Assembly (NCBI GenBank): GCA_964057225.1
Contig: OZ059900.1
Coordinates: 4,154,001-4,218,000 of the forward strand
Direction: 5' to 3'
DNA length: 64,000 bases
Origin: Auanema rhodensis
Lineage: Eukaryota; Animalia; Nematoda
Shown here: in pieces, positions 1-64,000 of the stretch
How positions within the stretch are numbered: position 1 is the stretch's first letter
Layout: each line of letters starts with the position of its first letter
Made by a program: the position numbers and the translations under genes
The notes under the pieces: model-generated
What the model saw: the letters and a program-made list of their open reading frames with translations, nothing else
Told to the model about the DNA's origin: nothing
Database searches by the model: none

Positions 1-705
1 AAACCCGAGCCAGTATACACACCGAAGTACATACACAAAACCGACAAAATAGACACATCTATGATTACCGGCAAGCCGTATCACAGAAAATGACTCAGAT
101 CCAACTACGAGCTTTTTAACTACAGCAATAACGTTTTACACTAGTGGAGCTGGAATTACCGCGGCTGCTGGCACCAGACTTGCCCTCCACTGGGTCCTTG
201 TAGAGCTATTTAAGCTCAGCTCAGTGAAATAATCAATCTAAAAAGATTGATCTTTTTATTTTTAGTTACTATCTCACTGAAGTAGTGGATAAGTTACGCG
301 CCTGCTGCCTTCCTTGGATGTGGTAGCCGTTTCTAAGGCTCCCTCTCCGGAGTCGAACCCTAATTCTCCGTTACCCGTGATCACCATGGTAAAACTCTAT
401 ATTACCATCAGGTTGATAGGGCAAACATTAATCTCGAAAAAAGACAGTAAAACCGTCGATTAACTGGGTTATTCAGAGTCAACAAACATTAAATTGGTTT
501 GTACTAATAACTGCGTTGAACTTGGGAAGAAGAACAACTATTAAGCATGTATTAGCTCCAGAATTACCACAGTTATCCATAGAAATCGAGAAAAATCATA
601 TCTGCTCTAATGAGCCGTTCGCAGTTTCTCAAAAATAATGAACTTTATACATGCATGGCTTAATCTTTTACTTGAGCATACAGCGCTGACAGAATCAATC
701 AGATT
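1..705 (-). rRNA. 18S (SSU) rRNA 5' fragment, unit 1 (cut by window edge)
   Basis: Minus strand starts AATCTGATTGATTCTGTCAGCGCTGTATGCTCAAGTAAAAGATTAAGCCATGCATG and contains the conserved SSU motifs ACGGCTACCACATCCAAGGAAGGCAGCAGGCGCG and GTGCCAGCAGCCGCGGTAATTCCAGCTCC. Confidence 0.97.
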
Positions 706-1010
706 CGCAATAGAGAATCCATTATTTCTTACTAAACAATATAAATATCGAGAAGTAGAATAATTTTTTTTTCCCAATTCACCAAAAAAATTAAGAAAGT
801 TGAAAAATCACACAGAAACGACACATTATAGAAAATATTCACATTTTTCAATGTGAACAAGTAAAATTGCAGATAACGAAAATTATTGTAAAAATTTTCT
901 CCTGCTACCTTACGATTGTGATATCGTTTCGGTGAATAGTGTAACAATCTTCAGATATTATTTCATAATGTTTATATTCCGATGAAACATTCCAGTAAAA
1001 ATTTTATGTA
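706..1010 (-). promoter_or_regulatory. Putative 5' ETS / RNA Pol I promoter region (present in every unit, immediately right of each 18S 5' end)
   Basis: Non-repetitive AT-rich ~305 bp between the 18S 5' end and the subrepeat array. Assigned by position only; the transcription start cannot be identified. Confidence 0.55.
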
Positions 1011-1870
1011 AAATACTTTTCCTGCAAAAATACACCTACAAACTACTTTTCCTGCAAAATTACACGAAAAAAAATTTTTCCTGCAAAAATACACAAAGAA
1101 AAAGTTTTCATGTATAAATACACGAAAAATAATTTTTCCTGCAAAAATACACAAAGAAAAAGTTTTCATGTATAAATACACAAAGAAAAAGTTTTCATGT
1201 ATAAATACACGAAGAAACTACTTTTCCTGCAAAAATACACAAAGAAAAAGTTTTCATGTATAAATACACGAAAAATAATTTTTCCTGCAAAAATACACAA
1301 AGAAAAAGTTTTCATGTATAAATACACAAAGAAAAAGTTTTCATGTATAAATACACGAAGAAACTACTTTTCCTGCAAAAATACACAAAGAAAAAGTTTT
1401 CATGTATAAATACACGAAAAAAAGTTTTTCCTGCAAAAATACACGAAGAAACTACTTTTACCGCAAAAATACACGAAGAAACTACTTTTCCTGCAAAAAT
1501 ACACCTACAAATTACATTTCCTGCAAAAATACACGAAAAAAAATTTTTCCTGCAAAAATACACAAAGAAAAAGTTTTCATGTATAAACACACGAAAAAAA
1601 ATTTTTCCTGCAAAAATACACGAAGAAACTACTTTTCTTGCAAAAATACACAAAGAAAAAGTTTTCCTGCAAATATACACGAAAAAAAATTTTTCCTGCA
1701 AAAATACACGAAAAAAAATTTTTCCTGCAAAAATACACGAAAAAAAATTTTTCCTACAAAAATACACAAAAAAAAATTTTTCCCTGCAAAAATTCTAAAA
1801 AAAAATTTTTCCCTTGTAAAAATTCACTAAAAAATTTTTCTCCCTGCAAAAATGCGAAAAAAAAAAATTT
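1011..1870. repeat. IGS minisatellite of 29-30 bp monomers (~29 copies in unit 1; present in every unit, ~0.7-1.5 kb)
   Basis: Cores TTTTCCTGCAAAAATACAC or TTTTCATGTATAAATACAC plus 10-11 bp linkers (AAAGAAAAAG, GAAGAAACTAC, GAAAAATAAT, GAAAAAAAAT, CTACAAACTAC). Degenerate toward the right end. Confidence 0.95.
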
Positions 1871-1926
1871 ATTCAGAAATACTTCCCCGAAGACATATGG
1901 TATCAAAATTTCGTTCCTCTCTCATT

Positions 1927-2021
1927 TACTTGATTGATTCTGTCAGCGCTGTATGCTCAAGTAAAAGATTAAGCCATGCATGTATAAAGTTCATCATTTT
2001 TGAGAAACTGCGATAGGCTCA
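1927..2021 (+). pseudogene. Spacer copy 1 of the 18S 5' end (95 nt), inverted relative to the rRNA
   Basis: Matches the reverse complement of 611-705 with 6 mismatches in 95 nt. Recurs at 4931,7935,10823,13885,17240,20244,23242,26130,29018,32080,35084,37972,41623,44482,47525,50863,53837,56792,59747,63263. Confidence 0.95.
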
Positions 2022-60594: not shown

Positions 60595-60666
60595 ACAAAA
60601 CATCCAATCAAAGGATAGTCTCAACAGATCGCAGTTTATAAAGACTGCTCTACTGGATACAACACC
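60595..60666 (-). rRNA. 28S 3'-terminal fragment
   Basis: Copy of 2794-2865. Confidence 0.88.
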
Positions 60667-61510
60667 TACGAATGCCCCCGAATCGTCCCTATTAATCATT
60701 AATTCGACTCTCAAACCAATAAATAGAACCGAAGTCCTCTTTTATTATTCCATGATAGCACATACAAGCAATCGCTTGCTTTGAGCGCTTTGATTTATTC
60801 AAAGTAAACCCGAGCCAGTATACACACCGAAGTACATACACAAAACCGACAAAATAGACACATCTATGATTACCGGCAAGCCGTATCACAGAAAATGCCT
60901 CAGATCCAACTACGAGCTTTTTAACTACAGCAATAACGTTTTACACTAGTGGAGCTGGAATTACCGCGGCTGCTGGCACCAGACTTGCCCTCCACTGGGT
61001 CCTTGTAGAGCTATTTAAGCTCAGCTCAGTGAAATGATCAATCTAAAAAGATTGATCTTTTTATTTTTAGTTACTATCTCACTGAAGTAGTGGATAAGTT
61101 ACGCGCCTGCTGCCTTCCTTGGATGTGGTAGCCGTTTCTAAGGCTCCCTCTCCGGAGTCGAACCCTAATTCTCCGTTACCCGTGATCACCATGGTAAAAC
61201 TCTATATTACCATCAGGTTGATAGGGCAAACATTAATCTCGAAAAAAGACAGTAAAACCGTCGATTAACTGGGTTATTCAGAGTCAACAAACATTAAATT
61301 GGTTTGTACTAATAACTGCGTTGAACTTGGGAAGAAGAACAACTATTAAGCATGTATTAGCTCCAGAATTACCACAGTTATCCATAGAAATCGAGAAAAA
61401 TCATATCTGCTCTAATGAGCCGTTCGCAGTTTCTCAAAAATAATGAACTTTATACATGCATGGCTTAATCTTTTACTTGAGCATACAGCGCTGACAGAAT
61501 CAATCAGATT
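60667..61510 (-). rRNA. 18S 5' fragment (truncated)
   Basis: Copy of 2866-3709 with one substitution noticed at 61036. Confidence 0.97.
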
Positions 61511-61815
61511 CGCAATAGAGAATCCATTATTTCTTACTAAACAATATAAATATCGAGAAGTAGAATAATTTTTTTTTCCCAATTCACCAAAAAAATTAAG
61601 AAAGTTGAAAAATCACACAGAAACGACACATTATAGAAAATATTCACATTTTTCAATGTGAACAAGTAAAATTGCAGATAACGAAAATTATTGTAAAAAT
61701 TTTCTCCTGCTACCTTACGATTGTGATATCGTTTCGGTGAATAGTGTAACAATCTTCAGATATTATTTCATAATGTTTATATTCCGATGAAACATTCCAG
61801 TAAAAATTTTATGTA

Positions 61816-63206
61816 AAATACTTTTCCTGCAAAAATACACCTACAAACTACTTTTCCTGCAAAATTACACGAAAAAAAATTTTTCCTGCAAAAATACACA
61901 AAGAAAAAGTTTTCATGTATAAATACACGAAAAATAATTTTTCCTGCAAAAATACACAAAGAAAAAGTTTTCATGTATAAATACACAAAGAAAAAGTTTT
62001 CATGTATAAATACACGAAGAAACTACTTTTCCTGCAAAAATACACAAAGAAAAAGTTTTCATGTATAAATACACGAAAAATAATTTTTCCTGCAAAAATA
62101 CACGAAGAAACTACTTTTACCGCAAAAATACACGAAGAAACTACTTTTCCTGCAAAAATACACCTACAAACTACTTTTCCTGCAAAAATACACGAAAAAA
62201 AATTTTTCCTGCAAAAATACACAAAGAAAAAGTTTTCATGTATAAATACACGAAAAAAAATTTTTCCTGCAAAAATACACGAAGAAACTACTTTTCTTGC
62301 AAAAATACACAAAGAAAAAGTTTTCCTGCAAATATACACGAAAAAAAATTTTTCCTGCAAAAATACACCTACAAACTACTTTTACCGCAAAAATACACGA
62401 AGAAACTACTTTTCCTGCAAAAATACACCTACAAACTACTTTTCCTGCAAAAATACACGAAAAAAAATTTTTCCTGCAAAAATACACAAAGAAAAAGTTT
62501 TCATGTATAAATACAAGAAAAAAAAGTTTTCATGTATAAATACACGAAGAAACTACTTTTCCTGCAAAAATACACAAAGAAAAAGTTTTCATGTATAAAT
62601 ACACGAAAAAAAATTTTTCCTGCAAAAATACACGAAGAAACTACTTTTACCGCAAAATTACACGAAGAAACTACTTTTCCTGCAAAAATACACCTACAAA
62701 TTACATTTCCTGCAAAAATACACGAAAAAAAATTTTTCCTGCAAAAATACACAAAGAAAAAGTTTTCATGTATAAATACACGAAAAAAAATTTTTCCTGC
62801 AAAAATACACGAAGAAACTACTTTTCTTGCAAAAATACACAAAGAAAAAGTTTTCCTGCAAATATACACGAAAAAAAATTTTTCCTGCAAAAATACACAA
62901 AAAAACATTTTTCCTGCAAAAATACACGAAGAAACTACTTTTCCTGCAAAAATACACAAAGAAAAAGTTTTCATGTATAAATACACGAAAAAAAATTTTT
63001 CCTGCAAAAATACACCAAGAAACTACTTTTCCTGCAAAAATACACAAAAAAAACTTTTTCCTGCAAAAATACACGAAAAAAAATTTTTCCTACAAAAATA
63101 CACAAAAAAAAATTTTTCCCTGCAAAAATTCTAAAAAAAAATTTTTCCCTTGTAAAAATTCACTAAAAAATTTTTCTCCCTGCAAAAATGCGAAAAAAAA
63201 AAATTT
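61816..63206. repeat. IGS minisatellite array, divergent variant shared with the array at ~49.6-50.8 kb
   Basis: Private monomers ACAAGAAAAAAAAGTTTTC, AAAACATTTTTCC and CACCAAGAAAC are seen only in these two units. Confidence 0.9.
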
Positions 63207-64000
63207 ATTCAGAAATACTTCCCCGAAGACATATGGTATCAAAATTTCGTTCCTCTCTCATTTACTTGATTGATTCTGTCAGCGCTGTATGCTCAAGTAA
63301 AAGATTAAGCCATGCATGTATAAAGTTCATCATTTTTGAGAAACTGCGATAGGCTCACAGCTCAGAGACCAAAAAAATTTCCAAGTCCAAAAAAAATTTT
63401 TTTTTCAACATGTTTTCACGATACTCTCAAAACATTTTTTACACATTTTTAAAGAGTTTTAACATTGGAATTGAGAAACAAAATTTTTTTTTTACTTGAT
63501 TGATTCTGTCAGCGCTGTAGCTTTCGTCAAGGATTAAGCCATGCCAACCGCTCACCGACCACAAAAAAATTTTTTTCACGTACTTGATTGATTCTGTCAG
63601 CGCTGTATGCTCAAGTAAAAGATTAAGCCATGCATGTAGAAAGTTGAACTTTTTAAGCCAAACCGCCAACCGACCAAAAATTTTGTCTAGTCAAAAATTA
63701 TGGAAATTTTTGAAAAAATATGCAAATTTTTTTTTTCAAAACTATTTTTCAGAGTAGTCTTATTCTATTTTCTGACTCTTTTTACATGTTTTACACTATA
63801 TATGAAATATGTTTTGGAAAATTTCCCGATATGGCTTAATCCTTGAGGAAAGCTACAGCGCTGACAGAATCAATCAAGTAAAATTTGCCATTTTTATCAA
63901 AATTTTTGATTTTTTAAATTAAAATTCTCGGGTGACCATTTATATGCGCTTTTTTTTGAAAAATGGTTCCAATATTCCAATAAAGTATACTTTTTCTTAC

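Follow-up and report, generated by a model that had tools for sequence, protein, structure and literature searches.

In tomato, rDNA units were turned into a satellite by the stepwise loss of their coding sequence (PMC2679016). In the lamprey, a truncated 28S is part of the Germ1 repeat, and Germ1 together with the hagfish EEEb3 is described as belonging to the amplified repeats that carry truncated 28S or 5S rDNA (PMC9734144). Pseudo-NORs and neo-NORs are engineered arrays which, in human cells, tie up the Pol I machinery (PMC3923965), and degraded rDNA copies are mentioned for the human genome in PMC5381670. No report of an array like the one described below was found in the literature for a nematode.

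The array fills the window, i.e. the whole stretch of 64,000 bp that was analysed. It is best explained as rDNA turned satellite, in which one deletion was amplified by unequal exchange and which is most likely silent; the probability of this reading was estimated to be about 0.68. As in the case of the tomato IGS-derived satellite (PMC2679016), a tandem array would have originated from rDNA through the loss of coding sequence and would have expanded by unequal recombination or segmental duplication, with changes in the number of spacer subrepeats. However, the published rDNA satellites end as spacer subrepeats only, whereas here the transcription unit still has its outer shell with the presumed promoter and ETS, and an undegraded 844-nt piece of 18S and the 28S end meet at one clean 18S::28S junction in all units. 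Germ1 and EEEb3 are, like this array, amplified families built around a truncated rRNA gene fragment. In Germ1, the 28S is joined to R2-derived sequence and the repeat is eliminated from the soma; in contrast, the present array has no transposon part. With the engineered rDNA minigenes and pseudo-NOR arrays it shares a presumed promoter and leader joined to the terminator region, the body of the rRNA being gone, and the arrangement as a long, here presumably ectopic, array. Those arrays are artificial and their factor binding has been demonstrated; the likeness would extend to their working only if Pol I factors bind here.

The window contained 20 complete and 2 partial rDNA-derived units arranged head to tail, the rRNA sense of all units being on the minus strand. 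In each complete unit, 18S nt 1-844 was fused to the final 72 nt of the large-subunit rRNA, giving a fusion of 916 bp. The rDNA is that of a nematode, and the unusual start of the 18S would suit a rhabditid-like one. The unit length, determined as the junction spacing, ranged from 2,840 to 3,651 bp among the 20 complete units. The differences resulted almost wholly from the number of 29-bp spacer subrepeats, the blocks of which were 674-1,467 bp long. Short copies of the 18S 5' end, three antisense and one sense, lay in each unit 0.3-0.9 kb downstream of the 28S tail. The features of the array, of a representative unit and of the further fusion copies are as follows.

1..64000, minus strand: tandem array, 20 complete and 2 partial rDNA units with the internal deletion
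4014..4874, minus strand: representative unit, block of 29-bp spacer subrepeats
3710..4013, minus strand: representative unit, ~300 bp from the last subrepeat to the 18S start, presumed Pol I promoter and 5' ETS
2866..3709, minus strand: representative unit, 18S rRNA nt 1-844 (5' domain and start of the central domain)
2794..2865, minus strand: representative unit, 3'-terminal 72 nt of the large-subunit rRNA, abutting 18S nt 844
1871..2793, minus strand: representative unit, distal spacer (3' ETS and IGS) with four short copies of the 18S 5' end
2495..2540, minus strand: sense mini-copy of the 18S 5' end, 40/47 identical
2249..2334, plus strand: antisense mini-copy, 18S nt ~5-89, 78/88 identical
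2161..2208, plus strand: antisense mini-copy, 18S nt ~5-53, 43/49 identical
1931..2021, plus strand: antisense mini-copy, 18S nt ~5-95, 88/91 identical
1..705, minus strand: partial fusion at the window edge, 18S nt 1-~705 (Rfam)
5798..6713, minus strand: 916-bp 18S::28S fusion, copy 2
8802..9717, minus strand: fusion copy 3
11690..12605, minus strand: fusion copy 4
14752..15667, minus strand: fusion copy 5
18107..19022, minus strand: fusion copy 6
21134..22049, minus strand: fusion copy 7
24109..25024, minus strand: fusion copy 8
26997..27912, minus strand: fusion copy 9
29885..30800, minus strand: fusion copy 10
32947..33862, minus strand: fusion copy 11
35951..36866, minus strand: fusion copy 12
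38839..39754, minus strand: fusion copy 13
42490..43405, minus strand: fusion copy 14
45330..46245, minus strand: fusion copy 15
48373..49288, minus strand: fusion copy 16
51730..52645, minus strand: fusion copy 17
54685..55600, minus strand: fusion copy 18
57640..58555, minus strand: fusion copy 19
60595..61510, minus strand: fusion copy 20, the sole variant (sense T>C at window position 61036)

In the Rfam search of the 64 kb, only SSU_rRNA_eukarya was matched, every time on the minus strand. Model positions 4-605 were matched at 446 bits (E 1e-131) in every unit, together with a weaker V4 piece. With laxer Rfam filters the SSU match started at window position 3709 and, therefore, 18S nt 1-844 correspond to positions 3709-2866. 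No 5.8S, LSU or 18S 3' half was detected in the 64 kb at Rfam gathering scores, and no telomere repeats were found within the window. The array is without the capacity to encode a complete rRNA.

The exact junction string GGCATTCGTA|GGTGTTGTATCC (minus strand) was found 20 times in the window. Rfam did not call the 72-nt 28S tail, whether or not the stretch was trimmed exactly to the junction. A pattern derived from the tail matched at least 120 environmental rDNA contigs, in many of which the final ~75 nt of the LSU aligned with the tail at about 90%. In contig L003, where the LSU gene (24-3680) was verified by Rfam, the pattern lay 23 nt short of the end of this gene. Judged by these alignments, the 72-nt tail is the true LSU end. 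The base preceding the tail in related LSU genes is A or G, which indicates a join with 0-1 nt of microhomology. Over 18S nt 700-844, 20 distinct environmental 18S sequences had 79 columns with a conservation of at least 95%, and the retained 18S matched 78 of them; L023 and L043, both from human-gut assemblies but not considered human, were left out of this comparison. A single 18S-type hit to L043 in the local BLAST was disregarded.

The locus was assigned to the rDNA-derived satellites on the basis of one unit being repeated in a long head-to-tail tandem array (20 complete and 2 partial units in 64 kb), the descent of this unit from rDNA (an SSU match of 446 bits per unit and a tail aligning to LSU ends), and the lack of a full rRNA set in the unit according to the Rfam search of the 64 kb. 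A functional 45S rDNA array was rejected, as the complete 18S, 5.8S and 28S were not found by Rfam in each unit. rDNA orphons and pseudogenes are, like this array, non-functional rDNA-derived sequence, but they are dispersed, single and degraded, whereas the units here are arrayed, undegraded and more than 99% uniform. An orphon or pseudogene was rejected given the arrayed copies, the 19 identical fusions out of 20 and the 78 of 79 intact conserved 18S columns. The original prediction had described the 916-bp fusion (844 nt of 18S and 72 nt of 28S) in all 20 complete units, with undegraded SSU motifs and with no 5.8S, 3' 18S or 28S body in the 64 kb, and had concluded that no functional rRNA can be made. 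The structural statements were confirmed by the junction count, the Rfam matches and the 18S and LSU-end alignments.

Among the 20 complete units, 17 distinct sequences were determined. Groups of units were defined by common substitutions, neighbouring units were more alike than random pairs (permutation p = 0.0008), and an exact two-unit block was found again 9 units away. Because of the 17 unit variants, the likeness of neighbours and the duplicated two-unit block, the amplification was attributed to unequal exchange, under which the length variation in the number of 29-bp subrepeats is also expected. The single identical junction in 20 of the 20 units points to one deletion event, and the earlier proposal that one such event was amplified agrees with this junction and with the tandem arrangement. 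The description of the array as homogenised was correct for the fusion, which was identical in 19 units and carried one substitution in the twentieth, but not for the units as a whole.

The exact two-unit block recurring at a distance of 9 units could have been made by the assembler, and the near-invariant 18S part could be an effect of polishing. According to such an explanation, the junction exists but the long array, or its placement, was produced during the assembly from far fewer copies. This was considered very unlikely, as the 17 distinct units, the structured common variants and the differing subrepeat counts are unlike collapse-and-expand artefacts. The sequencing runs point in the same direction. 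A 60-base query in which every word spans the junction was used, with 2 words sampled, and junction-spanning 31-mers were present in four DNA runs from two studies, X1-X3 (study P1) and X4 (study P2). All four runs are flagged as possible assembly sources, which limits their independence. Their data sets are very small, 176-460 million letters, and therefore likely only multi-copy sequence was assembled into contigs, which argues against inflation from a few copies. The junction is genuine DNA rather than a single accident of assembly.

The junction words were missing from X5 and X6, which bear the same species label, though the spacer was represented there about as well as in X4. The absence of the junction despite the spacer points to a dispensable, polymorphic array. 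The original prediction had named the absence of the junction from the data as the sign of an artefact, and this was not observed, the 31-mers being found in X1-X4 as possible assembly sources. Regarding the presence across samples, the junction was detected in these four runs but was apparently absent from X5 and X6, an outcome that had been named as speaking against a function. Germ1 and EEEb3 differ between germline and soma, and here the junction words differ from run to run; this difference is a lead only. Intact rDNA and independent contigs of the same species were also searched for. Exact patterns from the boundary of the 28S end and the spacer and from the 18S V4 gave no match in genome_contigs or viral_contigs, 16 exact ORF look-ups found nothing in the collection, and the homology search with the V4 ORF gave no candidate.

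The 916-bp rRNA-derived part contained 1 segregating site, compared with 14 in the 1,278 bp of non-subrepeat spacer (Fisher p = 0.006). The corresponding pi values were 0.011% and 0.22%, i.e. about 20 times lower in the rRNA-derived part. A satellite with a single founder and no constraint should vary evenly and, consequently, the low diversity of the fusion reflects either selection, ongoing gene conversion from intact 18S, or polishing with intact-18S reads. Continuing exchange with intact genes could account for the very low diversity of the 18S part. The uneven variation counts against the satellite reading, as does the appearance of the units, in which the 18S part is undegraded and the shell of the transcription unit is whole, as a transcribed unit would look.

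These properties would also suit natural 'minigenes' that are transcribed and act as decoy or selfish rDNA. With a presumed promoter, a 5' ETS, the 18S 5' domain and a terminator, such units would titrate Pol I factors as well as early SSU-processome proteins and would lower or buffer the output of the intact genes. The whole transcription-unit shell is present in every unit, the undegraded 18S part varies about 20 times less than the spacer, and in human cells the Pol I machinery is indeed sequestered by engineered arrays of binding sites for Pol I factors (PMC3923965). The decoy explanation was nevertheless regarded as unlikely. The low diversity follows more simply from gene conversion or polishing, and the lack of junction words in X5 and X6, which contain the spacer, suggests that the array is dispensable and polymorphic. 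Furthermore, the junction words were found in no listed RNA run, which is a weak negative, as 2 words were sampled in contig sets from which rare forms are dropped. A quite improbable extension of this explanation is a natural Pol I-transcribed 'minigene' array with a selected 18S 5' domain, which would either titrate Pol I and factors of the early SSU processome or supply a small-RNA pathway directed against rRNA. Restricted to certain individuals, strains or cell lineages, it would be a polymorphic, possibly selfish modulator of ribosome production. Selection on the 18S 5' domain would explain the 20 times lower variability in comparison with the spacer.

The four short copies of the 18S 5' end in each unit, three of them antisense, together with the strong conservation of the fusion, could also be expected from a locus dedicated to an ncRNA or to small RNAs. 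dsRNA or antisense ribosomal siRNAs regulating rRNA would then arise from the chimeric RNA, or from transcription running on into the spacer with its antisense copies of the 18S start. No RNA evidence was found for it among the listed runs in a 31-mer index, small-RNA reads being shorter than 31, and the chance of this role was judged to be slight indeed.

The rDNA-derived satellite is thus the preferred reading, and its formation may be outlined as follows. In one ordinary rDNA unit, a single blunt break-and-join would have removed the sequence from 18S nt 845 to 73 nt before the 28S end. The leftover unit of ~3 kb would have retained half of the 18S joined to the 28S tail, with the spacer of 29-bp subrepeats, the presumed promoter and the 5' ETS on one side and the downstream spacer on the other. 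It was probably then multiplied into a long array via unequal exchange between sister chromatids or homologues and via duplication of several units at once, and the same processes would have kept the uniformity above 99%. No ribosomal RNA would be obtained from the array; if it is read by Pol I, a dead-end precursor of ~1.2 kb would be produced and degraded. Most likely, the array is silent.

Under the satellite reading, the array would represent rDNA that has only begun to turn into satellite DNA and is still readable, with one datable deletion, an intact transcription-unit shell and structured variation among the units. Long reads could then yield rates for unequal exchange as well as for gene conversion involving the working genes. 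If the units are transcribed or bound by Pol I factors, they would be the equivalent in nature of the minigene and pseudo-NOR arrays engineered for the study of nucleolus formation; if they are silent, the array would be an ordinary though unusually clean satellite. It would also call for caution with rDNA copy-number estimates based on the 5' half of 18S.

The only substitution detected within the fusions, the T>C at window position 61036 in copy 20, replaces a G.U pair of an SSU helix by G-C.

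The array of mini units (tandem rDNA-derived repeats carrying a 916-bp fusion of 18S and 28S sequence) was searched against Rfam at gathering thresholds, which resulted in 41 matches in the window, every one to SSU_rRNA_eukarya on the minus strand. No Rfam match to 5.8S or LSU was obtained within the 64 kb, and the original prediction that the 5.8S and the 28S body are missing was borne out by this Infernal-type check. In each unit, SSU model positions 4-605 were matched with 446 bits (E 1e-131); the V4 region was covered by a second, weaker piece. With laxer filters the SSU alignment of the representative unit started at window 3709, so that its 18S part spans 3709-2866 and has the predicted length of 844 nt. 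The exact junction string was found 20 times in the window with a spacing of 2,840-3,651 bp, and 29-bp-based subrepeat blocks were detected by Tandem Repeats Finder at a period of about 3 kb throughout. The fusion, expected to be identical in all 20 complete units, was so in 19; the remaining one carried a single substitution at window 61036, which changes a G.U pair of an SSU helix to G-C and gave a slightly higher Rfam score (448.0 vs 446.3 bits). The observation of a mini-rDNA array as a whole was confirmed. The order of the parts in rRNA sense is as follows.

Anatomy of the representative mini unit
4874-4014, minus strand: 29-bp subrepeat block
4013-3710, minus strand: putative promoter and 5' ETS region, about 300 bp
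3709-2866, minus strand: 18S nt 1-844
2865-2794, minus strand: last 72 nt of the LSU
2793-1871, minus strand: distal spacer, about 920 bp, with four short 18S 5'-end copies, one in sense and three in antisense orientation

The 72 nt following the junction had no Rfam match, even when the stretch was cut flush at the junction. The predicted identity of this tail as the 28S 3' tip was studied with a degenerate pattern derived from it and scanned against metagenome contigs, where at least 120 loci were found. In L003, an environmental contig which also carries an 18S gene downstream of the LSU, the pattern was located at 3623-3657; the LSU there is matched by Rfam over its full length (24-3680) and ends 23 nt past the pattern. 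The 72 nt of the window aligned to the LSU over its final ~75 nt with about 90% identity in L003, L012, L057, L084 and other contigs. Judged from the position of the pattern in L003 and from these alignments, the tail is the genuine 3' terminus of large-subunit rRNA. Across the LSU of relatives the tail starts with the conserved GGTGTTGTA, and the preceding base is A or G; therefore, no more than 1 nt of microhomology is possible at the join to 18S ...CATTCGTA. This points to a blunt deletion of the end-joining type, as read from the LSU of relatives rather than from that of the species itself. The LSU tails and 18S 5' ends nearest to those of the window, about 90-93% over short stretches, were found in L019, L026, L057 and L084. 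These contigs resemble intact rDNA units from other nematode-like animals and are potential outgroups.

The 18S piece was compared with 20 distinct environmental eukaryotic 18S sequences, from which columns conserved at ≥95% were defined. Between 18S nt 700 and 844 the mini-unit copy agreed at 78 of the 79 conserved columns. This agreement and the Rfam score confirm at the level of sequence that the piece, including the SSU motifs predicted to be intact, is undegraded.

The units varied in length almost entirely within the subrepeat block (674-1,467 bp), the remaining spacer parts measuring 926-968 bp and 333 bp. Substitutions were present at 14 sites of the spacer outside the subrepeats, together with two indels. 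The first indel is found in a single unit (window 19020-22046), where a short direct repeat of 23 bp (AAAAGGTATACTTTATTTGTAAG) has an additional, third copy. The other, a 19-bp deletion in five units (window 43403-49285 and 52643-61507), marks a sub-family toward the high-coordinate end of the window. The array had been described as homogenised, which holds for the fusion, identical in 19 of 20 units, but not for the units as wholes, among which there were 17 distinct sequences. Groups of units were defined by variants in common, and neighbouring units showed 2.5 differences vs 3.5 for random pairs (permutation p = 0.0008). Two successive units (3,004 + 2,888 bp) form a block at 6711-12602 that is repeated exactly at 33860-39751, nine units away; it arose either by segmental duplication of several units of the array or as an assembler repeat. 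The 17 variants, the grouping of shared variants, the likeness of neighbours and the recurring block are the signature of a real array that evolves by unequal exchange and by duplication of several units at a time, rather than of a pasted consensus.

The best-supported reading is that of a single deletion followed by amplification into an rDNA-derived satellite. One rDNA unit would have undergone one blunt internal deletion, the deleted unit would then have been amplified by unequal exchange, and the outcome would be a satellite incapable of giving ribosomal RNA. The same junction in 20/20 units and the pattern of variation agree with the single amplified deletion event proposed from the sequence originally. 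Stepwise conversion of rDNA units into an IGS-derived satellite was described in tomato (PMC2679016); in lamprey and hagfish there are amplified repeats that include truncated rRNA genes (PMC9734144). In contrast to these repeats, the mini unit still has a complete outer shell of transcription-unit sequence, and its 18S 5' domain is undegraded. In architecture, each mini unit resembles experimental minigenes and pseudo-NOR/neo-NOR arrays (PMC3923965). Due to this likeness, decoy, selfish or ncRNA roles of the array may still be considered, but they gained no support from any of the analyses.

In an unconstrained satellite, even variation along the unit would be expected, because a single deleted unit was the founder of them all. 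One segregating site was detected in the 916-bp rRNA-derived part (pi 0.011%) vs 14 in the 1,278-bp non-subrepeat spacer (pi 0.22%), making the rRNA part about 20 times less variable (Fisher's exact p = 0.006). The low diversity may result from gene conversion with the numerous intact 18S copies as donors, from selection on the fusion, or from short-read polishing with reads of intact 18S genes.

To search other sequence data, 31-mer words were sampled from two queries and looked up in the contig sets of sequencing runs. With a 1-kb stretch of spacer and junction (window 1900-2900), the word shares in DNA runs of organism A were 0.60-0.61 (X1-X3, study P1), 0.45 (X4, study P2) and 0.40-0.42 (X5-X7, study P2), and those of organism B were 0.18-0.24 (X9-X11, study P3). 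The RNA runs had only small shares of this stretch, as expected of mature rRNA parts. From a 60-base query centred on the junction (window 2836-2895), all 31-mers of which cross it, two words were sampled, and both were present in X1, X2, X3 and X4. The junction thus exists in DNA data of two studies, but all four runs were flagged as possible assembly sources, which limits their independence. Neither of the two words was present in the contig sets of X5 and X6, which do not prove absence, or in those of the listed RNA runs. The spacer shares of X5-X7 were near that of X4, yet without the sampled junction words, which suggests, as a lead, that some samples with this species label lack the array or contain it at low abundance. 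Such apparent absence argues for dispensability.

The short copies of the 18S start were present in the spacer of every unit; their positions in the representative unit are listed below.

Copies of the 18S start in the distal spacer
1931-2021, plus strand: antisense copy
2161-2208, plus strand: antisense copy
2249-2334, plus strand: antisense copy
2495-2540, minus strand: sense copy

These copies cover the first ~50-95 nt of 18S and are of two sequence types. The first type is almost exact (88/91). In the second, which is diverged, the sense and antisense forms agree with one another.
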